This document shows positions 46,609 through 63,553 of a stretch of DNA of 64,000 nt, one piece after another. Positions within the stretch are counted from its first letter, which is position 1; each line of letters starts with the position of its first letter. Where the stretch lies: NCBI GenBank assembly GCA_965240325.2, contig OZ251237.1, positions 1,550,001 through 1,614,000 on the forward strand, written 5' to 3'. The position numbers were made by a program, and so were the translations under genes. This DNA comes from Rebecca billardiae RCC1528 (Eukaryota > Protista > Haptophyta). The notes under the pieces are model-generated. The model saw only the letters and a program-made list of their open reading frames with translations, was not told the origin of the DNA and searched no databases.

Positions 46609-47119
46609 TGGCGGCGGCGGTGGCGGCGGTGGTGACGGCGGTGGTGTGTGTGCGCGGCGTGTGCCGTGCGCGGCGTGCGGAGGCGGCCGCGCCGCGCGGC
46701 GCACGTCGGGGAGCGCCCACGGCGCCCGGCTCGTGGCCGCCGGCGCGCGCCGCTGGCAGACGCCGACAGCCGGACAGGCCGAGGCCGAGCTGTCGGCGAC
46801 GTCGGCGGCCATCGCGGCGGCGGCCATGCGCATGGCGTCGCTGGACGGCCGCTGCCCGGGCCGAGCAAGTGCTGGATTGCTGCGGCACTGCTGGCGAGTG
46901 CTGCGTGTACGTCAGACCATCAGGTCATCATGCACCGCACAGCGTCAGCTGCGCGCGTGATCAGACTGCTTCGATGACGACGGCTCAATTAAACTGATAA
47001 CTATCAGCATCGTCAGTGCTATCAGATATATAAGTGCTGTCGCGCGCTGACAATAGTGATAGTCGGCGGACGCGATATATATATATATAATAATGACGAT
47101 TAGAGTCGGCCGTAGCTAG

Positions 47120-47580
47120 GCCGGTCAGAGTAGCCCCACTGTATGGGGTGTGTGGCCCAAAATCCAACTTTCTGTCGTCTGCTTGAGATGACTATACTAT
47201 ACGCGCTCTCAAACTGAAACTTCGGGATGTCAATATTCGCCTGAAATGACCTGGGGTCACGCTGATAAGTTTTGCGAAAAATGTCACATATACTGGACTG
47301 ATATATACGACCTCAATCTCGACGCGATCTCGGCAACATTAGTAGGGGCCCCAGATACACGATCTCCAAGGTGATCTCGCTATTTGCACCAGAATCGCAC
47401 CGGCTAGATCACATTTTGGCAGTCTGGAATTGGCACAGGCGGATTCTACACCCTGGAATTAAGCCTGCTATAAACGAACTTAAACGGACTCAAACAGTTA
47501 TGAATAGAGGAGATATTTCATATTTCGAGATTTCGGGAGATTGTGTCACTCGGGAGTGTACCGGTCGGAGCTCTGACCCC
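47120..47580 (+). mobile_element. MITE copy A (5' TIR degraded; 3' TIR GGAGCTCTGACCCC)
   Basis: Collinear with copy B (47591-48028) along its length. Confidence 0.8.
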
Positions 47581-47590
47581 ACTGAGAGTC

Positions 47591-48028
47591 GGGGTCAGAG
47601 CCCCACTGGGGGGTGCGTGGCCCAAAATCCAACTTCCTGTCGTCTTGACTGACTTGAGATGAGGCTCTCAATAAACTTCGGGATGTCAATATTCGCCGCC
47701 TGAAACGAGCTGGGGTCACGCTGACAAGTTTTGCGAAAAAATGTCATATACGACCTCAATCTCGACGCGATCTCGGCAACATTAGTAGGGGAGATACACG
47801 ATCTCCAAGGTGATCTCGCTATTTGCACCAGAATCGCACCATCTAGATCACATTTTGGCAGTCTGAAATTGGCACAGGCGGATTTTACACCCTGGAATTA
47901 AGCCTTATAACGCCTACTAACTAGTTCGTCCAAGTAAATACCCGCGTGTGATAGTTCATGCTAAGAGATTTCGGGAGATTGTGGCACCCAAGAGTGTTAC
48001 TGAGTGTAACGTTCGGAGCTCTGACCCC
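47591..48028 (+). mobile_element. MITE copy B, ~440 bp, with 14-bp TIRs GGGGTCAGAGCCCC / GGAGCTCTGACCCC
   Basis: TIRs have one mismatch; AT-richer non-coding interior; three related copies in the window. Confidence 0.82.
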
Positions 48029-48356
48029 ACTAAATGACGATGACGTTATCAGTTATGACTACTAGCTTATTACTCTGCTTACGGTGCAGTCCGCAGAGTT
48101 GAGAGTGCTATTGGGGCCCGGGACTCGGCCTCGGGAGTGCTCACCAAGTGCTGAGCTCTGCACCGCCCTTTGGCTCTGCAGATCTCACGAGCAAGCGGGC
48201 GCGCGGTTTCTCACGAGGGACCGTTTGCCGCGTGCACGCTCTCCGAAGAGAACGGTATGGTACGGTACCGGTAGGTCGCTGGAAACTGCTTTGAACCCAT
48301 ATGCATGACCTCACGCGAGAGCACGCACAGTAGGCCAACGATCTCGTTTTACTAGG

Positions 48357-49772
48357 ATGGCACCGGCGCGCTCGGCAGCGGCGGCCGTGCGACTGACCGA
48401 CCTGCCGCCCGAGCTGGTCGCGCGCATCCTCGCCCACCTCGATGGCACGCGCGACCTCGCCGCCGCTAACGCCGCCGCGCGCCTCTTCCGCGGCGCGCCG
48501 CTCGAGCACGCGCTGCGCGAGCGCGCACGCTCCCGCGGGCACGAGGCCGCGCTGCCGGCGACCCTGCCCGTTGGCGCGTCCACGTGGGCGGAGGAGCTGC
48601 TCGCGCGCGAGCGTCTTCTCGAGCTCGCGCGCACGCACGCGCACGTCGTGGCTGCTGCCGGCGATGCTGTGTCGGATTGTGCATTCAGCGCGTTTGTCGA
48701 CGCGGACGGCGGCGTGCACACGTGTGGCGCACCGCTGGGCCATCCCGAGCTCAGCAGGCAGACGGACGTGCTCGTGCCGACGCGCGTGCGCTCGCTGGAG
48801 GCGATGCGCGTGCGCGCAGTGGCTGCCGGTCTCATGCACCTGCTCGCGCTGAGCGAGGCGGGCGCCGTGTACGCGTGCGGCCGCAACGAGTACGGCCAGC
48901 TGGGCGTGGGCGACAAGGCTGAGCGACGGGCGTTCGTGCGGGTGGCGGCGCTGGGTGCGGAGCTCGTCGTCGGCATTGGCGCTGGCGCCAACTACAGCTT
49001 CGCGCTCACAGCTGCGGGCGCGGCGTACAGCTGGGGCCGCAACCGCTATGGCCAGCTCGGCCACGGCGACACGGAGCACCGGCTGGAGCCGACGCGCATC
49101 GAGGCGCTGGACGGCGTGCGCGTGGGCGGCGTGGCCGCGGGCTGCTGGCACACGCTGCTGCTCTCGGCGTGCGGCGCCGTGTACTCGTGTGGGTATGCCG
49201 GTTACGGCCGCCTTGGGCACGGTGACGAGCAGCAGCAGCGCACGCTGCGGCGCATCGAGGCGCTCGCGGGTGTGCGCGCCGTGCACGTCAGCGCGGGCTG
49301 GTCGCACAGCCTGGTGGTGGACGCAGCGGGCGGCGTGCACTCCTTCGGAGGCGGTTTAGGTGGCGCGCTCGGCCACGGTGACCAGGCGCGTCGCTTCGTG
49401 CCCACGCGCATCGAAGCACTGATGGGCGTGCGGGTCGTGCGCGCCAGCGCGGGCCTGCACAACAGCGCGGTGGTGTGCGCGGACGGCAGCGTGCACGCGT
49501 TTGGGAGCAACTACTTGGGCCAGCTGGGGCTGGGGCACCGAGAGGATCGCGCGCTGCTGCCCGAGCGGGTGGAGGGCCTCGCGCATGCGCGCGTGCTCGA
49601 CTGCTCACTCGGCGATCGGCACGCCCTCTACGTCACAGCAGACGGTGCCGTGCACGCGTGCGGCACGCATTCGGGCGCGCTCGGCCTGGGCGTGGGCGAC
49701 GATGGCGGATTGCAGCCGATGCCGCAGCGCGTGGTGCAGCCGCCGCCCCTGCTGTGCTGTGGGCCGCGCTGA
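48357..49772 (+). CDS. F-box + RCC1-repeat protein, paralog 1 (471 aa, intronless)
   Basis: N-terminal F-box-like LTDLPPELVARILAHLDGTRDLAAANAAARLFR, then ~7 RCC1 repeats (VYACGRNEYGQLGVG, AYSWGRNRYGQLGHG, VAAGCWHTLLL). Confidence 0.92.
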   Translation: MAPARSAAAAVRLTDLPPELVARILAHLDGTRDLAAANAAARLFRGAPLEHALRERARSRGHEAALPATLPVGASTWAEELLARERLLELARTHAHVVAAAGDAVSDCAFSAFVDADGGVHTCGAPLGHPELSRQTDVLVPTRVRSLEAMRVRAVAAGLMHLLALSEAGAVYACGRNEYGQLGVGDKAERRAFVRVAALGAELVVGIGAGANYSFALTAAGAAYSWGRNRYGQLGHGDTEHRLEPTRIEALDGVRVGGVAAGCWHTLLLSACGAVYSCGYAGYGRLGHGDEQQQRTLRRIEALAGVRAVHVSAGWSHSLVVDAAGGVHSFGGGLGGALGHGDQARRFVPTRIEALMGVRVVRASAGLHNSAVVCADGSVHAFGSNYLGQLGLGHREDRALLPERVEGLAHARVLDCSLGDRHALYVTADGAVHACGTHSGALGLGVGDDGGLQPMPQRVVQPPPLLCCGPR

Positions 49773-50299
49773 TCAACGGCCCGTGGCGGGTGCGGTGCTC
49801 ACGCGCGGGCTTGCGAGTGCGCGGTGCGCGAGTGCTCAGTGCTGCCCTCCGTACTCGTTCCGGCAGGCCGCGCTGCCAAGCAGCAGCCACTGAGGCCAGC
49901 TCCCGGCAGCTCGTGCTGTGCTGAGTGCGCTGCTGTGTACACGGGCCGTACATCATCATCATGCAGCCTCGTGTGGCAGCACGGTGGTGCTGGAGCAGCC
50001 GCTCGAGCTCGCACTACGGTGGCGAGGGTAGTGGGATAGATGGTGCGCTGATTGAGCTGCGAGCGTGGGCTCCGCACACCGCTCTTCACGATGAGTGACA
50101 GACAGTGACTCATCACTCAAGGGCAGTGACTCCCGGTCGACTCTGATATTCGCCCGCCGGCCCGCTGTCATTTTCGCCGGCCAACCGTCGTCGAGATTGC
50201 AGATTTGCAGAAGATCGAGTCAACGACGACGACGACGGCGAGGAGGGTCCGCACCGCGACGGCGGCCAAAGGGCGCAAGGGCTAGCGGCGAGGCGAGCG

Positions 50300-53200
50300 A
50301 TGGCCCCGCGACGACGGACTACGCCGCAAGCCGCGCGCCGTGGCTCACCGGCGAGCGCGCAGACGCGGACGCCGATCGTCGACGTCACCAGCAGCGAGGA
50401 CGAGGGCGACGCCGGCGTGGCGTCTCCCGCGCCCAACGGCACGCCCACGCCGCCGCCGCCGCAGACCACGCAGCGCGGCACACCCGTGCGCGCAGCCGCG
50501 CGCAACGCCAAGGAGACGTTCGCACGGCGCGAGGAGGAAGCCGACGAGGAGGAAGAGGAGGAGGAGGAGGTCGTGCCAGCGCGTCGCGCACGCTCGTCCC
50601 GCCGCGCGGCGCCGCGCAGCAGCACCCGCCGCCGCGCCGCGCGCGCGGCGGCGGCATGCTCGGGCGCCGACTCAGACCCCGACTACAGCGGCAGCGGCGG
50701 CAGCGGCGGCAGCGGCGGCAGCGGCGGCGAGGGCAGCGCGGGGGACGAGGACGACGATCCCGAGGCCGACGAGCGGTCAGAGCGCTCGTCGGACCCCGAG
50801 GCGGGCGCGAGCAGCGGCGCTGACGAGGAGGCGGAGGAGGCGGAGGGGGGCCGCAGCCGCGGCCGCGCTCGCTCGGCGCGCGCGGCCGTGGCGGCGGCCG
50901 CGGCCGCGGCGGACGCGGAGGGCGACGAGGGCAGCGAGGGCAGCAGCGCGTTCACGAAGGACAGCACGGGCGCGCGCGTGCGCAAAGAGCGCACCGACGC
51001 GATCACCTTGGATCCCCTCAAAGAAGTGCACGCGCTCTGGGCCGCGCCGGACGGGCGGCTGCGGCTGCGCTTCAACTTTTCCACGCTGCTGGCGATCGCA
51101 CGGCGCGCGGGCGGGTGGCGGCAGCCGCCGCACTTCCGCGCGCCGATGGACGCGGCGTTCGGCGCGCAGCTCAGGCGCAAGTTCGGCGCGCACTGCCTCA
51201 AGCTCGAGACCCTCCCGGGCGCGGCCGAGCGCTCGCACGCCGGCAGCGACTTCTTCGAGCAGCTGCAGGTGCGCACGCACACGCGCGCGCGCTGCACCGC
51301 ACTGTGTGCATGCGTGTGTGCTTGTGTGGGTGTGTGTCAGTCTGTGTTACCCTGTGTCAGGCTGTGTCGGCCTCTGTCCGTCTACCCATGCGGGTGCGTG
51401 CCTGTGTCTCTGAATGTGTGTGCACCCGCGCGCCCACACCGCCCAGCTGAGGCGCTCCTGCCCCCGACCCGAATCCACCCACGCCCCCTGCCCGCCCCCC
51501 GCCCCGTGCCGTCGGCTGGGCCGATGCAGCGCTTCCACTACTCGTCGCTGCTCTCGCAGGTGCGCGACCTGTTCGTGTGCCCGCTGTGCCTCGCGCTGCT
51601 CAGGGGCGCGGCGGACGGCGAGGCGGCGGCGGTCGCCGCGCGCGATGGCAGCGGCGCGGAGGCCGACCCGTCAGATCTGGACGGCGCCACCGCCGAGCGC
51701 CTCTCTGAGCGCGTGCACGCGCTGCTGGGCTCGGAGGCGCACTTCGAGCCGCTGCGCGCGCTGTACAGCGCGGATGCGGTCCGAGAGTGTGCGCGCGAGG
51801 CCGGCTGCTTCGCCGAGCGCGCGGCGGCGTGCGTGTGCTTCGAGACCAAGGTGCGGCACCACCTGCGGCACCGGCGGCACCGGCGGCACCTGCGGCACCG
51901 GCGGCGCTGCCGTCCGCGCACGCCCCCTTCCGCGCGCGCACCCGCCCGCCCGCCCGCCCGTGCCCGCGCCAGCTTGGCCGATGCGCTTTGCGCCGCCTGA
52001 TCGCGCGGCGCGGTGTGCTGGGCCAGATCGGGCCAGAGCAGACCGCGTCGCTCGTTCTGACCCGGGCTCTGCCCCGCACCCCGCGCGCGGCGCTGCTGGC
52101 GCGCGCGCAGGCGGCGGTGCGCGCGCACCTGTGCGCCGACCACGGGCTGAGCCGCGCGGCGCTCGCCGGGCCGGACGTGGCGGAGCGGCTGGAGGCGTTC
52201 AAGATGCGCGACCGGGACGGGCTGGTGCAGCGCTGGGTGGGCGGCGGGCGGCGCGCGGCGGGCAAGTCGGTCTCCGCCGGCCACCTGCAGGCCTACTGGC
52301 GGCAGTGCGGCGGCACCAGCTCTGCGCCCGGACTCGAGCCGGACGAGGCGCCGGACGAGGAGTGGCTGTGGACCAACGCCCTGCGGTACGTGCTGCTGTA
52401 CGACGAGGTGCAGCGGCGGAGGCAGGCGAGCGCGGCGAGCGCCGCCGCCGCCAAGCGCGGGCGCGGGCGCGCGAGCGCGCGGCACGAGCGCGGCTCGCCC
52501 AGCCCCTCGCCCAGCCCTGCGGCCGGCAGCGCGCGCCGCGGCCGCCGCGGCCGCGTGCTCGCGTCGAGCGACGACGAGGCGGAGGAGGCGGGCGCGGGCG
52601 GCGGGGCGGGTGGCGGGCGCGCGGCCGGGCCCGGCGGCGGCGGTGCGGGCGACGCCGCCCTCGACCCCTCCGAGCCGCTGCCCCCCGCCTGTGGGCCCCT
52701 CCGCGACAGCCTGCTGCCCGCCGCCACGCCCGCCGCGCGCACGCTCGGCCGACTCATCTTCGAGAGCCTCTTCCCGCCGCAGCCCGCGGACGACGACATG
52801 GCCGAGTGGCTGAGGAGCGACGACGACGACGACGACGAGGAGGAGGAGGAGGCGGGCGCGCGCCGTGCGCCCGCCCGCCCCGAGGAGGCGGAGGAGGAGG
52901 CCTGGGAGGAGGCGATGGTCGAGCGCATGCGCAACGGGCAGGCGGACGCACAGGCGGACGCGAGCACAAGGCGGGCACAGGGGCGGACACCGGGGCGGGC
53001 GCGCCCAAGCGGCGGCGGCAGCGAGGAGGAGGAGGGCGACGACGACGACGAGGAGGAGGAGGAGGACGAGGAGGAGGAGGAGGACGACGAGGAGGAGGAG
53101 GCGGAGGACGAGAGCGATCCCGCCGACGGTCCGGCCGGCAGCCAGGACGAGGACGAGGACGGCGGCGGCCGCTTCATCAGCGGCCGAGTCGAGTACGAGA

Positions 53201-53802
53201 TCGAGCCTGACGAGCTCGAGCTGGCAGAGCGAAGGATGCGGGAGGCGCGCAAGCGCCGGCGCTCGGCGGGACGCGGCCGGCCGGAGCGCGACGCCGCCGA
53301 GCCTACGGCCGACGGCGCGCGCCCAGCCGCAGCCGCAGCCGCAGCCGCAGCCGCAGCCGCAGCCGCAGCCGCAGCCGCTGCCATCGATGACAATGATGAC
53401 GATGATGAGGAGGCGGAGGAGGAGGGCCGGACCAGTCCGGTGCGCCGGGTGGCGCGGCGCGTGTCTCTGGGGGAGAGCGGCGGCAGCGCCGGGCGCACGC
53501 GCGCGCGATGGCGCCGCGCGATCGAGGACAGCAGCGAGGACGAGGCGGCCGCGCCGGCCGCCGCTGAGGCAGCGGGCGCGGCCTGCGCCACCGCCTCGGC
53601 CTCTGCGGCTGCGCCGGCTGCTGCCAGCGCGCCACTGCTGCCGCCGGCGCTGCCGTCGCCGCCTGGCTCGGAGCTGCGTGGCGCAGCGGCCCCGGCGGCC
53701 GCTGGCAACGATGGTGACGATCGCGCTCTGGACGCCAGGAGTGCCGCGCTGGTCGAGGCGGGCGGGACGACCGCCTGCCCCGCCCCCGCGGCTGACGGCT
53801 GA
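50300..53802 (+). CDS. Hypothetical acidic/low-complexity protein; exons ~50300-51268, 51530-51850, 52027-53802
   Basis: Coding-like codon usage and frame-preserving GT-AG junctions. Ordered segments DAITLDPL...WRQPPHFRAPMD and LFVCPLC are flanked by D/E runs. No family recognised. Confidence 0.65.
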
Positions 53803-54023
53803 CGAGTGAGTGACGACCGCGCGCCGCGCAGCTCGGCACACTCACAGCACCCACCGACGAAGAAAATGAAAATGATGATGCGCGAGAAATCATGGCGGCC
53901 GGAATAAAAGAGAAGACTCGCGCCCGCGCAGCGTCACGCCACGCCGCCTCCCTCACGCCCGCGCGCATCCTCCCTTCGTCCGCCGGCGCCGATCCTGCGC
54001 GGAGCGGCGGGGCGGCCGCGCCG

Positions 54024-56333
54024 ATGAACCACAACGTGCGCGCGTGCCTCGCCCTGTGCGTCCTCTCGGGCATCGCCGACTCCACCTGGTCCGGCACCGT
54101 CCTCGCCGCGTTCATCCTCATCTCGAGCGGCTCGAACGCGACGGTCGGCCTGGTGGAGGCGGCGCAGGGGCTGGCGACGCTGCTGTTCGCGCTGCCGATC
54201 GGGTACCTCGCGGACACGTACTCGCGCTCCAACGTGATCGCGATGGGCGGCGTCCTCTGCCTCGCCGCCGCCGCCGCCACCACGTACGTGATCCTCGACG
54301 TCGAGCGCTCGTCCTCGCTCTCGACGCACGCGACCGCGGCGCTGTTCGGGCTGATGGCGCTGTGGGGCGTGGTGGGCGGGATCATCTCGGGGCCGGCGCA
54401 GGCGCTGTACGCCGACTCGATCCCCGCGGGCGAGCGCTCCAAGTGGTACGTCTACCTCTTCGGCGCGTACATGGTCTCCTCGGCCGTGGGCCCGCTGATC
54501 GCGGTGCTCTCCTTCCAGACGCTCACGCAGGACACGTGGACGCTGCCCGAGCTGCGCGTGGTGATCGTGTTCGGGATGGCGTGCGAGGCGGCGTGCGCGC
54601 TGGTCATGTTCACCTTCCGCGACAGCGCCGCGCTCGACGAGGGCGCGCCCGCCGCTGACGCCGCCGCGCCGGCCGGCGCCGCGCCGGCCGGCGCCGCGCC
54701 GGCGGACGCCGACGGCGCGGACGGCGCGGACGGCGCCGAGCCCGACGGCGCCACCCCTGCGGACGGCGACGCGGAGATCGTGCCGGCGCCGGCTGACGCG
54801 CCTGGCGCCGAGCACGCCGCCCCGGCCTCGCCCCGCGCGTCGGCGCCGCCGCCGCGGAGCGCGGCCCCGCCGCCCGCGCGCGCGCCGCCGCGCGCCTGCC
54901 CTCCCCGCTGCGGTGTGGGCTGCGGTGTGAGCGTGGGCGCCATCCCGTATGTGCTCTTCAGCTCGAGCCTGCTCACCGCGCTCGGCGCGGGGATGACGGT
55001 CAAGTTCTTCCCGCTCTTCTTCAAGGTGGACTGCCGCCTCTCGCCCACGCAGGTGCAGTGCATCTACATCGCCGTCCCGTTCGCCATGGTGCTCTGCTCG
55101 GGGCTGATGCAGCGGCTCTCCACGCTGGTCGGGCGCGTGCAGACGATCGTGCTGGCGCGCGCGTCGGGCGTGGCGCTGCTCTTCACGATGGCGGCGCTGC
55201 AGCTGCGCACGCGCGCGTCGGGCCTCGCGCTCGTGATGATCCCGATCTACATCCTGCGCACCGCGCTGATCAACTCGGTCTACCCGCTCGAGGAGTCGAT
55301 CCTGATGGACTACGTGCCGAGGCAGCGGCGCGCGCGCTGGAAGTCGCTCGAGTCGGTCGCTCAGTTTGGCTGGTGCGCGCGCCACGCCGCGCCACGCCGC
55401 GCCACGCCACGCCACGCCACGCCCGTGCGCGTGCGCGTGCGCGTAGGCGTGCGGGCGCGGGTGGAGGGCGGAGGGGCTGGGACGGGGCAGCAGGGAGGAC
55501 GCGCCCGCGAGCCCGCCCGCGCGGCCGTCGCCGCCCGCCCGCCCTCAGCGCTGCCCTCAGCGCTACCCTCAGCGCTGCCCTCAGCGCTACCCTCAGCGCT
55601 GCCCTCAGCGCTGCCCTCAGCACTGCTGCGAGCGCGCACCCCGCCCCGCGCACGCGCGCCGTGCGCACGCGCCGACGCGTGCAGGTGCGGCAGCGCGGCC
55701 GTGGGCGGGTACCTGGGCGACCGCTACTCGTACTCGTTCACGTTTGTGATCACCGCGACGATCCAGGGCGTGGCCACGCTGCTCGTCGCCACGCTGATGC
55801 CCGTCGTGCCGAGGCGCGAGGCGGACGCGTCGCTGCACGCGCGCGGCGGCGGCGCGGACGGCGCCGCCGCGGAGGAGGGAGGCAGCGGCGGCGGCTGGGG
55901 CGGCGCGCGCAAGCGGCGCGGCGCAGACCGGCGCGCGGGCGCGCTGTCCCGCGAGCTGCACGAGCCGCTGCTCGACCCGGTGGCGGACAGCGGCGGCGCG
56001 CACGCCGGCGCGGGCGCGAGCGCCTCGGACGACGGCGCGGGCGGCGAGGCGGAGGCCGAGCCGGAGGCGGGCGCGGCGGCGGCGGCGGGGCGCGCCTCGC
56101 GCGAGCGGCTGCACGAGGGCTACATTGCGCCGCCGCTTCGGCCCGCGCAGGGCGCAGCGGCAGGTGGCGAAGCGGCCGACGCGGCCGCCGGGCGCGAGGG
56201 CGCCGCCGGGTCGGCCGCCGCTGTTCTGGCCCCGCAGGCCGACGGCGGCGGCACACCGGCCGCGCCCCATCCGGCCCCGCGCCGCCGCGGCAGCACGCCG
56301 GTGCCGCTCGTGACGGCACCGGACGGGAGCTGA
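54024..56333 (+). CDS. Major facilitator superfamily transporter; in-frame intron at 55373-55684
   Basis: About 12 hydrophobic helices; MFS motif A-like PIGYLADTYSRSNVI; ALYADSIP, GAGMTVKFFPLFF, SILMDYVPRQRRARWKSLES, FGW|CGSAAVGGYLGDRYSY. Confidence 0.9.
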   Translation: MNHNVRACLALCVLSGIADSTWSGTVLAAFILISSGSNATVGLVEAAQGLATLLFALPIGYLADTYSRSNVIAMGGVLCLAAAAATTYVILDVERSSSLSTHATAALFGLMALWGVVGGIISGPAQALYADSIPAGERSKWYVYLFGAYMVSSAVGPLIAVLSFQTLTQDTWTLPELRVVIVFGMACEAACALVMFTFRDSAALDEGAPAADAAAPAGAAPAGAAPADADGADGADGAEPDGATPADGDAEIVPAPADAPGAEHAAPASPRASAPPPRSAAPPPARAPPRACPPRCGVGCGVSVGAIPYVLFSSSLLTALGAGMTVKFFPLFFKVDCRLSPTQVQCIYIAVPFAMVLCSGLMQRLSTLVGRVQTIVLARASGVALLFTMAALQLRTRASGLALVMIPIYILRTALINSVYPLEESILMDYVPRQRRARWKSLESVAQFGWCARHAAPRRATPRHATPVRVRVRVGVRARVEGGGAGTGQQGGRAREPARAAVAARPPSALPSALPSALPSALPSALPSALPSALLRARTPPRARAPCARADACRCGSAAVGGYLGDRYSYSFTFVITATIQGVATLLVATLMPVVPRREADASLHARGGGADGAAAEEGGSGGGWGGARKRRGADRRAGALSRELHEPLLDPVADSGGAHAGAGASASDDGAGGEAEAEPEAGAAAAAGRASRERLHEGYIAPPLRPAQGAAAGGEAADAAAGREGAAGSAAAVLAPQADGGGTPAAPHPAPRRRGSTPVPLVTAPDGS

Positions 56334-57067
56334 GGCGCGCTGCCAGATGATGTCTACTGATGATGCGCTGGTGCTGATATATGTATATATATCGCGTATA
56401 GATCATCGCGCGTCGCAGTAGTAGCGCATCATCATCGTCGCGTCATCATCATCGCTAGAGCACTGATGAGCGCAGCATCCCAGCATATCGCTTTGCCGAT
56501 CGCCGGGCGGGCGCCCGCGCATTGGCCGCGCGTTGTTTCAGCATCACCGCCCGGCGCCGCCGGGTCGTCACTGCGGCATCGGTTAAGTCGCGTAGCAGTA
56601 GTAGTAGTACTGCACCGTGCACGCCCACCGGCGGGAAGTATCGACGCGCGGCGGACGGGCCTGACGGTCACGGCCGGCTTCGTCCCGCGGCACGGCCTCA
56701 GGCCTGCCGCCGTGCCGCGTGCTGCGGCCGCCCCGCTGCTGCCGTTCATCGTGGCCGCTGGCGGCGGGGCGGCGGGCCCCGCCTTGCCGCCGCGAGCGCG
56801 CGGCTGTCGTCTCGGCGCAGCCGGCGCCCACCCCCCCGCGCGCGCGCGCTCGCAGCACTTGGCCAGCCGCTCCATCAGCGCGCCGCTGCCGGTGAAGGTG
56901 CCGCACGCGCAGAGAGAGCGCGCGCGCGCCGTGCACGCGACGCACGTGTCGGCGCGCGCGTGCGCTGCGCACGGCTGGGCGCCCGCCCAAATCGAGCCGA
57001 CAGCGGTGTGAAGAGACCACGCGCGCAGCTGATTGAGCGCACCATCTCAGATCTCCCCGAATGATGC

Positions 57068-58492
57068 TCAGCGCACCCCACAGCGCAGGGGCGGCAGCTG
57101 CACCACGCGCTGCGGCATCGGCTGCGCTCCGCCGTCGTCGCCCACGCCCACGCCGAGTGCCGCCGAATGCATGCCGCACGCGTGCACACCGCCGTCCGCC
57201 GTCACGTAGAGAGCATGAGAGCCGCCGAGTGAGCAGTCGACCACGCGCGCATGCGCCAGGCCCTCCACCCGCTCGGGCAGCGTGCGAGCGACTCGGTGCC
57301 CCAGCCCCAGCTGGCCATAGAAGTTGTTTCCAAACGCGTGCACGCTGCCGTCTGCGCACACCACCGCGCTGCTGCAATAGCCCGCGCTGGCGCGCACGGC
57401 ACGCACGCCCGTCAGTGCTTCGATGCGCGTGGGCACCAAGAGACGCGTCTGGTCCCCGTGGCCGAGCGCGCCACAGATACCATGTCCGAAGGAGTGCACA
57501 CCGCCCGCTGCGTCCACCACCAGGCTGTGGTGGCTGCCCGCGCTCACATGCACGGCGCGCACGCCTGCAAGCGCTGCGATGCGCCGCGGCGTGCGCTGAT
57601 GCTGCTCGTCACCATGCCCAAGGCGGCCGTGATCACCATACCCGCACGAGTACACGGCGCCGCACGCCGAGAGCAGCAGCGTATGCCCCCCGCACGCGGC
57701 CACGCCGCCCACGCGCACGCCGTCCAGCGCCTCGATGCGCGTCGGCTCCAGCCGGTCCACCTTGTCGCCGTGGCCGAGCTGGCCCACGCCATTGTGGCCC
57801 CAGCTGTACGCCGCGCCAGCGGTCGTGAGCGCGAAGCTGTGGTTGGCGCCAGCGCAAATGCCGACGACGAGCTCTGCGTCCAGCGCCGCCACCTGCACGA
57901 ACGCCCGTCGCTCAGCCTTGTCGCCCACGCCCAGCTGTCCGTACTTGTTGCTGCCGCACGCGTACACGGCGCCCGCCTCGCTCAGCGCGAGCAGGTGCTT
58001 GATGCCGGCAGCCACCGCACACACGTGCACCGCCTCCAGCGACCCCACGCGCGTTGGCACGAGCACGTCCGTCTGCCTGCTGAGCTCGGGATGGCCCAGC
58101 GGTGCGCCGCACGTGTGCACGCCGCCGTCCGCGTCGACAAATGCGCTGAACGCTTCGTCATACGATCCACCGGAGGCTGCAATGTGCGCGTGCGCGTGCG
58201 CGAGCTCGAGTACACGCTCGCGCGCGAACAGCTCCTCTGCCCACGTGGACGCACCAACGGGCAGGGTCACCGGCAGCGCGGCCTCGTGCCCGCGTGCGCG
58301 CGCGCGCTCGCGCAGCGCGTGCTCGAGCGGCGCGCCGCGGAAGAGGCGCGCGGCGGCGTTGGCGGCGGCGAGGTCGCGCACGTCATCGATATGGGCGAGG
58401 ACGCGCGCGACGAGCTCGGGTGGCACGTCGGTCAGCCGCACGGCCGCCGCTGCCGAGCGCGCCGTGGCGCGCGCGTGTGTCGTCGGTGCCAT
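57068..58492 (-). CDS. F-box + RCC1-repeat protein, paralog 2
   Basis: Starts MAPTTHARATARSAAAAVRLTDVPPELVARVLAHI; collinear with paralog 1. Confidence 0.92.
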   Translation of the reverse strand: MAPTTHARATARSAAAAVRLTDVPPELVARVLAHIDDVRDLAAANAAARLFRGAPLEHALRERARARGHEAALPVTLPVGASTWAEELFARERVLELAHAHAHIAASGGSYDEAFSAFVDADGGVHTCGAPLGHPELSRQTDVLVPTRVGSLEAVHVCAVAAGIKHLLALSEAGAVYACGSNKYGQLGVGDKAERRAFVQVAALDAELVVGICAGANHSFALTTAGAAYSWGHNGVGQLGHGDKVDRLEPTRIEALDGVRVGGVAACGGHTLLLSACGAVYSCGYGDHGRLGHGDEQHQRTPRRIAALAGVRAVHVSAGSHHSLVVDAAGGVHSFGHGICGALGHGDQTRLLVPTRIEALTGVRAVRASAGYCSSAVVCADGSVHAFGNNFYGQLGLGHRVARTLPERVEGLAHARVVDCSLGGSHALYVTADGGVHACGMHSAALGVGVGDDGGAQPMPQRVVQLPPLRCGVR

Positions 58493-58575
58493 CAACCGAG
58501 GGTGGTCGCGCCACTGCTGTCGGCGGTTGGCCAATAAGGTTTATTTTGGTTTTTGCAGTCGTGATAATTATGATA

Positions 58576-58654
58576 CGCCTGCCTGAGCTGTGTGCGTCTC
58601 TTATTCTTAGTACAGTTTACTAAGAATAAGAGACGCACACAGCTCAGGCAGGCG
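58576..58654. repeat. Perfect hairpin: 37-bp arms and a 5-nt loop
   Basis: cgcctgcctgagctgtgtgcgtctcttattcttagta-cagtt-tactaagaataagagacgcacacagctcaggcaggcg. Confidence 0.95.
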
Positions 58655-58854
58655 ATCATCTCATTTTCGCGCTCAATTCTTTTTCATGCTGACGATGATG
58701 GGCCGTAAATCTGATCGACAGCCGACTCCGCGTCGACGTCGTGTTGTACGTGTCACAGTGTGCTTGCAAAACGCTGGCCCAAGCCAACAGCGGTGTGCGA
58801 AGACCACACGCGCAGCCGAATGACCGCACAATCTCAGATCTCCCCGAATGATGC

Positions 58855-60282
58855 TCAGCGCGGCCCACAGCGCAGGGGCGGCAGCTGCACGACGCGCTGA
58901 AGCATTGCGGGATGCACTCCGCCATCGCTGCCCAGGCCCAGGCCGAGCGAGCCTGGCGGGTAGCCGCATGCGTGCACGCTGCCGTCCGCTGTGACGTAGA
59001 GGGTGTGCAATATGCCGAGTGAGCAGTCGAGCACGCGCGCATGCGCGAGGCCCTCCACCCGCTCGGGCAGCGGGCGAGCCACATGGTCCCCCAGCCCCAG
59101 CTGGCCGTAGCAGTTGAGCCCAAACGCGTGCACGCTGCCGTCCGCGCACACCACTGCGCTGCTGCAACCGCCCGCGCTGGCGCGCACGGCACGCATGCCG
59201 CCCTGCGCTTCGATGCGCGTGGGCACCAAAGGACGCGCCTGGTCACCGTGGCCGAGCGCGCCACCAAACGCGCCTCCGAAGGAGAGCACGCCGCCCGCTG
59301 CGTCCACCACCAGGCTGTGCGCAGGGCCCGCGCTGACGTGCACGGCGCGCACACCCGCGAGCGCCTCGATGCGCCGCAGCGTGCGCTGCTGCTGCTCGTC
59401 ACCGTGCCCAAGGCGGCCGTAACCGGCATACCCACACGAGTACACGGCGCCGCACGCCGAGAGCAGCAGCGTGTGCTCCCAGCCCGCGGCCACGCCGCCC
59501 ACGCGCACGCCGTCCAGCGCCTCGATGCGCGTCGGCTCCAGCCGGTGCTCCGTGTCGCCGTGGCCGAGCTGGCCCACGCCGTTGAAGCCCCAGCTGTACG
59601 CCACGCCAGCGGTCGTGAGCGCGAGGCTGTGGTGAGCGCCTGCGCCAAAGCCGACGATGAGCTCCGCATCCAGCGCGGCCACCTGCACGAACGCCCGTCG
59701 CTCAGCCGTGTCGCCCACGCCCAGCTGGCCGTAGTCGTTGCGGCCGCACGCGTACACGGCGCCCGCCTCGCTCAGCGCGAGCAGGCGCTCGTAGCCGGCA
59801 GCCACCGCGAACACCCGCAACGCCGCTAAGGAGCCGACGCGCGTCGGCACGAGCACGTCCGTCTGCCTGCTGAGCTCGGGATGGCCCAACGATGCGCCAC
59901 ACGTGTACACGCCGCCGTCCGTGTCGACAAACGCGCTGAAATGGTTGGCATAGAATGCAGCGGCGGCGGCAATGTGCGTGTGCTCGTGTGCGAGCTCGAG
60001 AATACGCTCGCGCGCGAGCAGCTCCTCGGCCCACGTGGACACACCAACGGGCAGGGTCGCCGGCAGCGCGGCCTCGTGCCCGCGCGTGCGCGCGCGCTCG
60101 CGCAGCGCATGCTCGAGCGGCGCGCAGCGGAAGAGGCGCGCGGCGGCGTTGGCGGCGGCGAGGTCACGTGTGCCACCGAGATGGGTGAAGATGCGCGCGA
60201 CGAGCTCGGGCGGCAAGTCGGTCAGCCGCACGGCCGCCGCTGCCGAGCGCGCCTTGGCGCGCGCGCGCGTCGTCGGTGCCAT
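58855..60282 (-). CDS. F-box + RCC1-repeat protein, paralog 3
   Basis: Start MAPTTRARAKARSAAAAVRLTDLPPELVARIFTHL assigned by homology; the longer ORF-track extension is antisense to the 60451 gene. Its 3' flank (58790-58854) is homologous to that of paralog 2 (57001-57067). Confidence 0.92.
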   Translation of the reverse strand: MAPTTRARAKARSAAAAVRLTDLPPELVARIFTHLGGTRDLAAANAAARLFRCAPLEHALRERARTRGHEAALPATLPVGVSTWAEELLARERILELAHEHTHIAAAAAFYANHFSAFVDTDGGVYTCGASLGHPELSRQTDVLVPTRVGSLAALRVFAVAAGYERLLALSEAGAVYACGRNDYGQLGVGDTAERRAFVQVAALDAELIVGFGAGAHHSLALTTAGVAYSWGFNGVGQLGHGDTEHRLEPTRIEALDGVRVGGVAAGWEHTLLLSACGAVYSCGYAGYGRLGHGDEQQQRTLRRIEALAGVRAVHVSAGPAHSLVVDAAGGVLSFGGAFGGALGHGDQARPLVPTRIEAQGGMRAVRASAGGCSSAVVCADGSVHAFGLNCYGQLGLGDHVARPLPERVEGLAHARVLDCSLGILHTLYVTADGSVHACGYPPGSLGLGLGSDGGVHPAMLQRVVQLPPLRCGPR

Positions 60283-60450
60283 CAACACCGCGCTGTCCGC
60301 GCGCGCGCCGACACGTCCTGTCGGTACCGGTCTCCTCCGATCCGGGTCACCTCCGGACGTCGTTGATGAACCTGAAACCCGTGTTGGCGTCAGGATCGCC
60401 GGGCGGCGGCGGGCGCGGCCGGCCGCCCGGCCAAGGGTGTCCTTGCCAGG

Positions 60451-61326
60451 ATGGCCCTCGACACGCGCGCTCTCGAGACGCCCACAGAGCGCCGGCATGC
60501 GACGAAGCGCTCCGTCGCAGGGGCTGTTGCGACCGTGCTCGCCCTGCTCGGCGTTGCGGCCGTGGTCGGCTCGCTCACGCTCGGCCTCCACGGCGCCCCC
60601 GCGAGGGCGGTCGGCGTCGCGCTCGAGCTGGGGCAGGCCGCGCAGGGGTGCAACACGCGCCCGGGCGACCCGGGGACGGAGCAGCACGACAACGCGGTGA
60701 TCTTCAACGGAGCCGCGGGCAACGCCATCATCGGCATCGACTTCGAGCCCACGCAGTGCGCCGTCTCCGCCGGCCAGCCGTTCGGCGGCATCGTCACCGA
60801 CGGCAAGGGCACGCAGATGCTCATCAAGGCGGGGCGGCACAAGACGGCCGCGGTGGCGGCGGCGTTCAAGCAGGGCATGGACGAGCTCCAGGCGCTCGAG
60901 TCGGGCGGCACCCTCGACTTGCTCCCGGAGGAGCTCAACTTCGCCGTCATGGGCATGATCACCTTCAAGTTCCAGTCGGGCGCCGTGAAGCGCTGCGCAA
61001 ACTTCCGCGTCGCGCAGGGCAGCGACGCGTTCCGCAACAACTGGTGCGCGCACGCGCAAGCGCGCGTCGAGCGAGTGCGGCGTACCGCGCTGTGGAGATC
61101 GCGGGCTCTGCGCATGCGCCCGCAGCGAACCAGCGTCCGGCGAGACAGCCGCCACCCCGCTCTTGACAGATGCAGTGCGCATGTGCCGCGCTGTCCCGCT
61201 AGGTGGGTGGGCTCGCCATCGTGCATGGGCATCACGACGTCCGACACGCTGGGCTGCAACTGCGGCGTCGAGCTCGGCCCGGGCGACGACGTGTACAAGT
61301 TTGTCGTCGCGGAGGTCACCGGATGA
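60451..61326 (+). CDS. Unknown Cys-containing protein with N-terminal signal-anchor; in-frame intron at 61044-61202
   Basis: TM VAGAVATVLALLGVAAVVGSLTLGL. Spliced C-terminus ELNFAVMG...CANFRVAQGSDAFRNNW|WVGSPSC. Strong C/G third-position codon bias. Confidence 0.75.
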   Translation: MALDTRALETPTERRHATKRSVAGAVATVLALLGVAAVVGSLTLGLHGAPARAVGVALELGQAAQGCNTRPGDPGTEQHDNAVIFNGAAGNAIIGIDFEPTQCAVSAGQPFGGIVTDGKGTQMLIKAGRHKTAAVAAAFKQGMDELQALESGGTLDLLPEELNFAVMGMITFKFQSGAVKRCANFRVAQGSDAFRNNWCAHAQARVERVRRTALWRSRALRMRPQRTSVRRDSRHPALDRCSAHVPRCPARWVGSPSCMGITTSDTLGCNCGVELGPGDDVYKFVVAEVTG

Positions 61327-61907
61327 CGACGACCGGACGAGTCAAGACTAAATATATGTGGGGTTATTGGTACAATAACTGATTGTCTAAGAGGACGACC
61401 GAAGAACGCCGGGCGCCAGCGCCGCTCATCAGCCACATCGCCCTCTACCAGACCATCGCCTCAAAGGGCTGCTCCCGGACAAACAGTCTGTCCGGGTTTG
61501 TCGCCCCGGAGATCTGTTTCCGGCGCCCCCTGGCTGCTTCGCCAGGCGCGGGCGGGCGAGATGGCTGCAGCCGGGCTCGTGGCCCTGCGTCGCCGGCGGC
61601 GGCGGCTCGCACGCGGGTGGCGCGTCGCGTGCACCCGGACCAACATCTTTATTCGGCATATATATACGACCTCACCCTCATCCAAGTGCTCCGGAGGGCG
61701 CTCGGCCGCGGCGGCATCTGCCGTCGCCGCCGCGTGCCCCAGGCCGAGGCGGTGCTCCATCCTGCGGCCCCGCTCCCGTAGGGGGGCAGGGCCGTGCGGG
61801 TGGCGCACTGTCTGACCTAGTGAGTGACCTGGACGGAAGGCGCGGACGCATTCTATGTAGTGTCTGTTGCACTCTGAGCCTGACGCTTGTCCGATGCTGC
61901 CACGCCG

Positions 61908-61911
<4 letters not shown>

Positions 61912-61950
<39 letters not shown>
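61912..61950. repeat. (TA)n microsatellite
   Basis: Directly visible; a second tract lies at ~35243-35295. Confidence 0.95.
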
Positions 61951-61953
<3 letters not shown>

Positions 61954-62125
61954 AGTAAAGAAATCGATTTTCGGCGTTACCGTAACCCGTCCGCACTTCC
62001 GCCCAGTGGGGATGCGGGGGAATTTTTTTCATGCCGCGTTCGCGGCACTTCGCGCCGCGATATATATATAAATAAAATAAGCCTGCGTGCGACCAGCGCA
62101 CCCGCAGCAGCGGCCCATCAGGCAC

Positions 62126-63553
62126 TCAGCGCGGCCCACATCGCAGGGGCGACAGCTGCACCACGCGCTGAAGCAACGGCTGCACTCCGACGCCATCGTT
62201 GCCCACGCCCAGGCCGAGCGCGCCCGAGCGTCTGCCGTATGCGTGCACGCCGCCGTCCGCCGTCACGTAGAGGGCGTGAGATCGGCCGAGCGAGCAGTCG
62301 ACCACGCGCGCATGCGCGAGGCCCTCCACCCGCTCGGGCAGCGTGCGATCCACTCGGTCCCCCAGCCCCAGCTGGCCACTGCTGTTGCTCCCAAACGTGT
62401 GCACGCTGCCGTCCGCGCACACCACTGCGCTGCTGCGCGAGCCCGCGTTGGCGCGCACGGCACGCACGCCCATCAGTGCGTCGATGCGCGTGGGCACCAA
62501 GCGATGCGCCACGTCACCGCAGCCGAGCGCGCCACCAAACGCGCCTCCGAAGGAGTGCACGCCGCCCGCTGCGTCCACCACCAGGCTGTGCTCGAAGCCC
62601 GCGCTCACGTGCACGGCGCGCACGCCCGCGAGCGCCTCGATGCGCCGCGGCGTGCGCTGCTGCTGCTCGTCACCGTGGCCAAGGCAGCCGCCAGAGCCAT
62701 ACCCGCACGAGTACACAGCGCCGCACGCCGAGAGCAGCAGCGTGTGCCCCCAGCCCGCGGCCATGCCGCCCACGCGCACGCCGTCCAGCGCCTCGATGCG
62801 CGTCGGCTCCAGCCGGTCCTCCGTGTCGCCATGGCCGAGCTGGCCATAGCGGTTGTGGCCCCAGCTGTACGCCGCGCCCGCAGCTGTGAGCGCGAAGCTG
62901 TGGTCGGCGCTAGCGCAAATCCCGACGACGAGCTCCGCACCCAATGCCGCCACCTGCACGAACGCCCGTCGCTCAGCCTTGTCGCCCACGCCCAGCTGGC
63001 CGTGGTCGTTGCTGCCGCACGCGTACACGGCACCCGCCTCGCTGAGCGCGAGCAGGTGCTTGTCGTCGGCAGCTACTGCACACACGCGCACCGCCTCGAG
63101 CGAGTTCACGCGCGTCGGCACGAGCACGCGAGACTCCCTGCTGAGCTCGGGATGGCCCAGCGGTGCGCCGCACGTGTGCACGCCGCCGTCCGCGTCAACA
63201 AAAGCGCTGAACGCGTCGGGATACATTCCACCGGAGGCTGCAATGCGCGTGTGCGCGTGCGCGAGCTCGAGCACACGCTCGCGCGCGAGCAGCTCCTCAG
63301 CCCACGTGGACACGCCAACGGGCAGGCTCGCCGGCAGCGCGGCCTTGTGCCCTCGCGTGCGTGCGCGCTCGCGCAGCGCGTGCTCGAGCGGCGCGCCGCG
63401 GAAGAGGCGCGCGGCGGCGTTGGCGGCAGCGAGGTCGCGCGTGCCACCGAGATGAGTGAGGATGCGCGCGACCAGCTCGGGCGGCACGTCGGTGAGCCGC
63501 ACGGCCGCCGCTGCCGACGCGCCCTCGGCGCGCGCGCGCGTGGTCGGTGCCAT
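62126..63553 (-). CDS. F-box + RCC1-repeat protein, paralog 4
   Basis: Starts MAPTTRARAEGASAAAAVRLTDVPPELVARILTHL; collinear with the other three. Confidence 0.92.
   Translation of the reverse strand: MAPTTRARAEGASAAAAVRLTDVPPELVARILTHLGGTRDLAAANAAARLFRGAPLEHALRERARTRGHKAALPASLPVGVSTWAEELLARERVLELAHAHTRIAASGGMYPDAFSAFVDADGGVHTCGAPLGHPELSRESRVLVPTRVNSLEAVRVCAVAADDKHLLALSEAGAVYACGSNDHGQLGVGDKAERRAFVQVAALGAELVVGICASADHSFALTAAGAAYSWGHNRYGQLGHGDTEDRLEPTRIEALDGVRVGGMAAGWGHTLLLSACGAVYSCGYGSGGCLGHGDEQQQRTPRRIEALAGVRAVHVSAGFEHSLVVDAAGGVHSFGGAFGGALGCGDVAHRLVPTRIDALMGVRAVRANAGSRSSAVVCADGSVHTFGSNSSGQLGLGDRVDRTLPERVEGLAHARVVDCSLGRSHALYVTADGGVHAYGRRSGALGLGVGNDGVGVQPLLQRVVQLSPLRCGPR

Follow-up and report, generated by a model that had tools for sequence, protein, structure and literature searches.

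A candidate diversifying family of F-box-like RCC1 propeller proteins with blade-periodic hypervariable loops in a unicellular alga

Expanded F-box families with positively selected substrate domains have been described from nematodes such as Caenorhabditis elegans (PMC8120010) and from plants, as the FBX superfamily (PMC3030570). These families, along with the S-locus F-box genes, are multi-copy and often clustered, combine a conserved F-box with a fast-evolving substrate domain, and have been proposed to take part in the recognition of foreign or non-self proteins. Here we analyze a 64-kb stretch of DNA from Rebecca billardiae RCC1528 (contig OZ251237.1; the whole stretch is referred to below as the window) that carries four intronless paralogs, p1 to p4, with a likeness to these families. 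In this case, however, the variable module is an RCC1 propeller that varies in step with its blades, not an FBA, FTH, LRR or Kelch domain. The host also differs, being a unicellular GC-rich alga, the putative F-box is divergent, and the family is known here from sequence alone. We consider it reasonably probable that p1–p4 form a substrate-receptor-like multigene family, with a diversifying ring on one face of the propeller and putative docking to a Skp1-Cullin-F-box (SCF) ubiquitin ligase. That an RCC1 propeller serves as the variable module, that its variation follows a strict blade-periodic pattern of two plus three residues, and that this occurs in algae all appear to be undescribed. Our literature search found no description of a hypervariable or selected F-box/RCC1 family (queries on haptophyte RCC1 mostly matched Roscoff strain numbers).

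An F-box combined with RCC1 repeats is also found in FBXO24, a mammalian F-box protein of the ubiquitin system (PMC10932545). The domain order is the same (F-box, then RCC1-like propeller), but the likeness is one of architecture only, as FBXO24 is a single-copy conserved gene without a repertoire or hypervariable loops. UVR8 is likewise a seven-bladed RCC1-like propeller, and its interface Trp and Arg residues (in GWRHT and G-W-x-x-x-G) occupy the positions that are hypervariable in p1–p4. UVR8 has no F-box, however, and its Trp triad is not conserved in the paralogs. The positions of W233, W285 and W337 are AN/AN/AH/AD, CW/GG/WE/WG and WS/SH/PA/FE, respectively, in p1–p4. Because of this variability, we rejected the idea that the paralogs are UVR8-like photoreceptors, and we saw no sign of photoreceptor function.

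The four genes lie within positions 48357–63553 of the window (Table 1). An earlier, sequence-only reading of this DNA had described four intronless paralogs. They are four complete, intronless open reading frames (ORFs), all of them intact and with zero internal stops, and the encoded proteins are 82%–84% identical. For p2, the start codon was chosen at the conserved MAPTT, which is in alignment with p3 and p4. A tblastn search of the 64-kb window returned no fifth copy or additional gene fragment.

The propeller part of that reading is borne out by several lines of evidence. All four paralogs match the Pfam families PF00415 (RCC1; six stretches, 193–220 bits, cut-off 21.7) and PF25390 (RCC1-like domain; 238–248 bits, cut-off 150). 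An AlphaFold2 (AF2) model of p1 computed from 49 homologues has a mean predicted local distance difference test score (pLDDT) of 94 and a predicted template modeling score of 0.92. DSSP assigns 28 strands in this model, that is, seven four-stranded blades, with helices at residues 18–26, 31–40 and 47–59 and a linker helix at 77–93. Among solved structures, UVR8 is closest (phmmer E = 5e-90, 30% identity; Foldseek E = 5e-37, template modeling [TM] score 0.88–0.92, normalized to target length). The Foldseek matches of the p1 propeller, which also include HERC2 and RCC1, have E values down to 5e-37 and TM scores up to 0.92. The match to RCC1, the Ran exchange factor, is only a distant one (E = 1e-27, 25% identity).

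The differences among the paralogs are concentrated at recurring places in this fold. We defined 35 blade-periodic positions, comprising the two residues after AG (loop 1) and x1, x3 and x4 of G-x-N-x-x-G (loop 2) in each of the seven blades. They account for 22 of the 37 alignment columns with at least three different residues (hypergeometric p = 3e-19) and for 8 of the 10 columns with four. Thus, the two variable loop spots per blade that the sequence-only reading had described do exist, and all of the motif strings that it quoted are present as written. Some of its wording needs correction, however. Variability does not extend to every loop, as loop 1 of blade 2 (A-N/H/D) and the first loop 2 (GAPLG) hardly vary. 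The number of variable blades is six to seven instead of five, with the closing blade (p1 residues 105–109) and the last loop (residue 437) also hypervariable. Finally, the scaffold cannot be called nearly invariant, given that 103 of its 431 columns vary, with a ratio of nonsynonymous to synonymous change (dN/dS) of 0.44.

In p1, the spacing of the loop-1 islands is 52 residues, except for 53 before the last one. Each island is a 6-nt stretch with sharp borders in which two to three bases per codon are changed, whereas the adjoining codons are nearly identical, including at silent sites. Codons with multiple nucleotide differences (multi-hit codons) make up 25 of 35 codons in the islands versus 43 of 431 elsewhere (odds ratio 23, p = 1e-15). 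Tyr (10.8% vs. 1.3%), Ser, Trp, Asn, Phe, Cys and Asp are overrepresented among the hypervariable residues, a composition like that of protein-binding hot spots. The GC content at third codon positions (GC3) is 0.73 in the 35 hypervariable codons compared with 0.875 in the rest (p = 8e-6), which we interpret as a sign of recent turnover. The codons TAT, GGT, TCT and ATA, which are rare elsewhere in p1–p4, occur in hypervariable positions.

Selection was evaluated using our own four-taxon implementation of the Goldman-Yang codon model with F3x4 frequencies. By the pairwise method of Nei and Gojobori (NG86), dS is 0.16–0.21 and overall dN/dS is 0.5–0.7, and model M0 gives a dN/dS parameter w of 0.38. 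Model M2a is strongly preferred over M1a (likelihood ratio test [LRT] statistic 112, p = 4e-25), with 4.6% of sites at w well above 1 and about 64%–67% of codons in a class with w ~0.02–0.03. The LRT is 109–112 under all three topologies; four segments analyzed with their own best trees give 18, 5, 23 and 60. Other model pairs give similar values (M8 vs. M7, 112.8; M8 vs. M8a, 111.9). The sites with posterior >0.9 number 12, and 10 of these are among the 35 periodic positions (p = 9e-11). By naive empirical Bayes, P(w>1) exceeds 0.9 at p1 residues 108, 159, 315, 316, 367 and 420 in loop 1 and at residues 231, 282, 387 and 437 in loop 2. A tree-free comparison gives dN of 0.685 at the 35 positions against a scaffold dS of 0.172, a ratio of 4.0 (bootstrap 2.8–5.7). 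The p-distance at four-fold sites is 0.128, which is far from saturation, compared with 0.476 at positions 1 and 2 of the hypervariable codons. Inside the loop classes, the NG86 proportion of synonymous differences (pS) reaches 0.33–0.38; we judged this to be a path-averaging artefact of multi-hit codons because neighboring codons have no excess of silent change. We rejected pseudogenes or neutral decay, given that none of the four ORFs is disrupted and that the low-w class contains about two thirds of the codons.

In a beta-meander propeller, successive loops alternate between the two faces, so the loop between strands 1 and 2 of a blade (S1–S2, after AG) and the S3–S4 loop (G-x-N-x-x-G) are on the same face. 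With strand boundaries taken from the AF2 model, seven of the sites with posterior >0.9 are in S1–S2 loops and three are in S3–S4 loops, with none in the 76 residues of the opposite-face S2–S3 and S4–S1 loops. The loop-1 positions align to the Trp-Arg of the UVR8 GWRHT motifs (W233/R234, W285/R286 and W337/R338). Position x1 of loop 2 aligns to W198, W250 and W302, which we take to be further members of the UVR8 dimer-interface set. The UVR8 dimer is maintained by the Trp triad and by R286 and R338 (PMC4501546). The placement of the variable loops on one propeller face, also part of the sequence-only reading, is thus supported indirectly, by predicted strand topology and UVR8 homology.

The pattern is not confined to the window. 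The closest outside relatives of p1–p4, from metagenomes and run assemblies, are 46%–54% identical to them. A second clade, found in metagenomes and related to an Emiliania huxleyi protein, has members that are 72%–76% identical to each other. Seven of its members have an F-box-like N-terminus and a near-constant scaffold, yet five to seven different residues occur among the seven sequences at AG-xx-H, at G-x-G-xx-G and also at GD-x-Q-x-Q. For the coding DNA of four members, the LRT is 103.6 (w = 18 for 8.5% of sites); it falls to 35.8 (p = 2e-8) when multi-hit codons are modeled (see below). Moreover, 17 of the 21 selected sites are in 32 periodic positions (p = 7e-19). Because this clade repeats the pattern, hypervariability is shared by at least two lineages of the family, which are most likely haptophytes.

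Several other features of the relatives were noted. In the Emiliania-like clade (L003–L006; proteins P0005–P0025), the coding DNA of the four members used in the codon test is intronless, as in p1–p4. The GD-x-Q-x-Q positions of this clade, which follow G-x-G-xx-G, constitute a third periodic class that is variable and partly selected, and the blades within one protein are unusually alike. An Atlas search returned, in addition to a chordate FBXO24 cluster, haptophyte RCC1-repeat clusters automatically named "putative F-box domain-containing protein." These clusters and EMIHUDRAFT_358730 are true relatives (38%–54% identity) that share the N-terminal module and the hypervariable positions, but are characterized by automatic annotation only. 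A 2024 sample (run X1) contains, in a comparison with positions 47000–52900, many short contigs that resemble the propeller of p1 (85%–90% similarity) and not its flanks; these contigs are from relatives of the family, not from the organism of the window.

The paralogs do not have a single history along their length. The three possible splits of p1–p4 are backed by 16, 18 and 16 informative sites, and the sites that support a given split cluster along the gene (22 runs vs. 34 expected, p < 1e-4). In addition, some loop cassettes are common, codon for codon, to different pairs of paralogs (e.g., in blade 3 to p1/p3 and in blade 4 to p3/p4). Based on both observations, we conclude that the paralogs exchange segments.

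There are several reasons for caution regarding selection. Each test involves four sequences, and the codon models are home-made. Importantly, a multi-hit model that allows double and triple nucleotide changes reduces the LRT from 112 to 14.6 (p = 7e-4; w2 = 12, 3.1% of sites), and allowing such changes improves the null model by 72 log units. The signal thus depends in large part on multi-nucleotide differences between codons, and these could also be produced by a mutational or micro-conversion process. The global multi-hit model is conservative, because multi-hit codons are concentrated in the islands. A further complication is that the non-coding flanks of the paralogs are unalignable (800 bp on each side), although coding dS is ~0.17. 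Similarity ends at the coding borders, with only ~70 bp of 3' flank aligning, between p2 and p3. This suggests that either only the coding sequence was homogenized or only the coding part was duplicated. Given such flanks, the coding similarity is possibly maintained by conversion; silent sites may be homogenized or constrained, in which case dS understates the age of the copies.

These concerns converge on an explanation that involves no adaptation, in which the loops are simply unconstrained, and conversion, codon bias or GC-biased conversion lowers dS so that dN/dS at the loops is inflated. The divergent flanks, the mosaic structure, the high GC3 of the scaffold and the effect of the multi-hit model are all compatible with it, as is the finding that the low-information positions of RCC1 repeats in the consensus of the wider family are the same ones that are hypervariable in p1–p4. 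However, conversion tracts would be expected to homogenize 6-nt islands with a spacing of only 50–100 bp as well, but the islands differ at two to three bases per codon directly beside codons that are identical. The unsaturated four-fold sites are also hard to reconcile with the divergence at hypervariable codons, as is the excess of multi-hit codons at the loops. Furthermore, the comparison of M8 with M8a uses w = 1 as its null, and the multi-hit test stays significant in both clades. We regard relaxed constraint combined with concerted evolution as improbable. Diversifying selection at the loop sites, which the sequence-only reading had proposed, is thus supported by our analysis, in a weaker but still significant form when multi-hit changes are allowed.

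Alternatively, the islands could be generated by targeted mutagenesis and not by selection, through the rewriting of short tracts, for example, by templated micro-conversion from diverged paralogs or by programmed diversification. Such a process would account for the sharp island borders, the two to three changed bases per codon, the high multi-hit rate parameters (delta 0.16–0.25), the loop cassettes common to different paralog pairs and the lower GC3 of the islands. The window, however, contains no template copy or extra gene fragment, which rules out template-driven diversification inside it. Ordinary recombination and repeated positive selection account for the same observations, and even with a localized mechanism, selection would be required to restrict the changes to ligand-face positions. 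We know of no such mechanism in eukaryotic germlines, and consider this explanation very improbable.

The nature of the N-terminus is less straightforward than that of the propeller. PF12937 (F-box-like) ranks first or second among Pfam families for all four N-termini, and 29 of 49 full-length homologues match it at E ≤ 0.01. We built a profile (A3) from the N-terminal 100 residues. Its best 11 PDB matches are all F-box proteins (including FBXW7, FBXO22, FBXO31, FBXO3, cyclin F and MAX2), aligned in register on their F-boxes, with E values of 0.036–2. Among 1.84 billion representatives, A3 retrieves 315 clusters; when 65 of these were scanned, F-box-like was found in 40 (best E 1.9e-40) and F-box in 14. 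A few proteins in the A3 clusters have LRR or ankyrin C-termini, which are typical of other F-box proteins. The segment is also conserved among the paralogs, with a proportion of nonsynonymous differences (pN) of 0.067, pN/pS of 0.47 and zero selected sites in residues 6–97.

Other results are less favorable. The PF12937 scores of p1–p4 (19.3, 11.7, 20.8 and 14.7 bits) are below the gathering cut-off of 24.3. Searches with the isolated model of the N-terminus (pLDDT 75) were uninformative, as neither of two structure search tools placed an F-box above noise: in Foldseek the best E was 2.4 and Fbw7 was only at rank 28, and in VIA-align the best Z was 5.2, with SLY1 at rank 47 (Z 3.8). A region-limited protein search with residues 8–100 returned no match, and the Leu of the F-box Leu-Pro motif is replaced by Val in p2 and p4. 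Overall, the F-box claim of the sequence-only reading stands at the level of the family and its profile, whereas p1–p4 themselves are below the Pfam threshold. From these sequence comparisons, we are fairly confident that the segment is a divergent F-box.

Another possibility is a diversifying binding family that is not an SCF receptor. The F-box could be degenerate or re-purposed and without Skp1 binding, with the propeller acting as a stand-alone binder, a scaffold or a regulator of small GTPases. The sub-threshold Pfam scores, the Leu-to-Val replacements and the failure of fold searches to single out F-boxes would fit this possibility, and RCC1-like domains do serve in many contexts (HERC, RPGR, RCC1). 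Conversely, the N-terminus is conserved and free of selected sites, is in register with homologues that do pass F-box thresholds, and has a profile whose top PDB matches are solely F-box proteins. In addition, a protein that combines F-box and RCC1 domains, FBXO24, functions as an SCF subunit in mammals (PMC10932545). We therefore consider a non-SCF binder unlikely.

Under the SCF-receptor model that we prefer, the F-box-like three-helix motif would most likely dock the protein on Skp1 of an SCF ubiquitin ligase, and the seven-bladed propeller would be the recognition module. Specificity would reside in a ring of ~30 residues, to which each blade would contribute two residues from its S1–S2 loop and three from its S3–S4 loop, and this hypervariable ring would be the substrate-binding surface. 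The codon analysis points to diversifying selection on the ring, whereas for the core, the F-box and the opposite face it indicates purifying selection. Blocks of blades would be reshuffled among paralogs by recombination or gene conversion; the mosaic structure itself is an observation. In this way, the germline would encode a repertoire of SCF receptors that share a scaffold but differ in specificity. Candidate ligands include viral or parasite proteins, fast-evolving endogenous proteins, and determinants of self/non-self recognition or mating, as in S-locus F-box systems.

Giant viruses control haptophytes such as Emiliania at sea, and to our knowledge, protein-level immunity in these algae is almost unexplored. 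A much bolder proposal is that haptophyte-like algae possess a combinatorially shuffled germline repertoire of dozens of F-box/RCC1 receptors, in which a ring analogous to antibody complementarity-determining regions would direct giant-virus or parasite proteins to the proteasome. We offer this as a speculation that is on balance rather unlikely; if true, unicellular eukaryotes would have an innate immune system of a structurally new type. More generally, the family provides concrete candidates for host–virus or self/non-self recognition, with defined residues and the same selected positions in two lineages. It would, moreover, be an example from nature of a propeller scaffold whose binding ring can be designed.

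Table 1. Features of the F-box-like/RCC1 paralogs (positions are those of the window; CDS, coding sequence)
Feature	Position	Strand	Basis and remarks
p1 CDS, 471 aa, intronless	48357..49772	+	Complete ORF; Pfam RCC1 x6, WD40_RLD 2e-73; AF2 pLDDT 94
p2 CDS, 474 aa from ATG at 58492	57068..58492	-	ORF spans 57068-58534; Pfam RCC1
p3 CDS, 475 aa	58855..60282	-	ORF and Pfam RCC1; upstream open frame to 61182 without homology
p4 CDS, 475 aa from ATG at 63553	62126..63553	-	ORF and Pfam RCC1
F-box-like three-helix segment of p1, residues 13-59 (putative)	48393..48533	+	PF12937 sub-threshold, predicted helices, profile matches
Equivalents of F-box-like segment (putative)	p2 58295-58435, p3 60085-60225, p4 63356-63496	-	
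Seven-bladed RCC1 propeller of p1, residues 98-458	48648..49730	+	DSSP strands; Foldseek to UVR8
Propeller equivalents	p2 57107-58180, p3 58894-59970, p4 62165-63241	-	
p1 loop-1 two-codon islands, after AG	48675..49619	+	Residues 107-108, 159-160, 211-212, 263-264, 315-316, 367-368, 420-421
p1 loop-2 positions x1/x3/x4 of G-x-N-x-x-G	48729..49676	+	Residues 125/127/128, 176/178/179, 228/230/231, 280/282/283, 332/334/335, 384/386/387, 437/439/440

The window is extremely GC-rich (56%–86% in 2-kb bins), and the paralogs are not strictly tandem, as p1 is separated from p2 by an acidic low-complexity region and a Major Facilitator Superfamily (MFS) transporter. The latter is encoded by an 813-aa ORF (53892–56333, plus strand) with a match to PF07690 (E = 8e-19) and long Ala/Pro-rich inserts. 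Because this MFS-type ORF sits between p1 and p2, the paralogs are interspersed with unrelated genes. At 50300–53800 (plus strand) there are long open frames with Glu/Asp and Ala/Arg runs and no Pfam match. Gene models in this region are uncertain because many frames are open simultaneously in GC-rich DNA. Between p3 and p4 lies a 291-aa ORF (60451–61326, plus strand) without Pfam matches, whose N-terminal segment is hydrophobic. On the opposite strand, the long non-homologous open frame that extends upstream of p3 overlaps with this ORF.

Finally, p1–p4 end in a conserved tail with a Cys four residues from the C-terminus (CGPR or CGVR; in p1, whose last residues are at positions 49758–49769 of the window, the sequence is CCGPR). 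From the sequence of this tail, it is conceivable that the Cys is part of a lipid-modification signal. The C-terminus of one relative (P0001) is CRAS.

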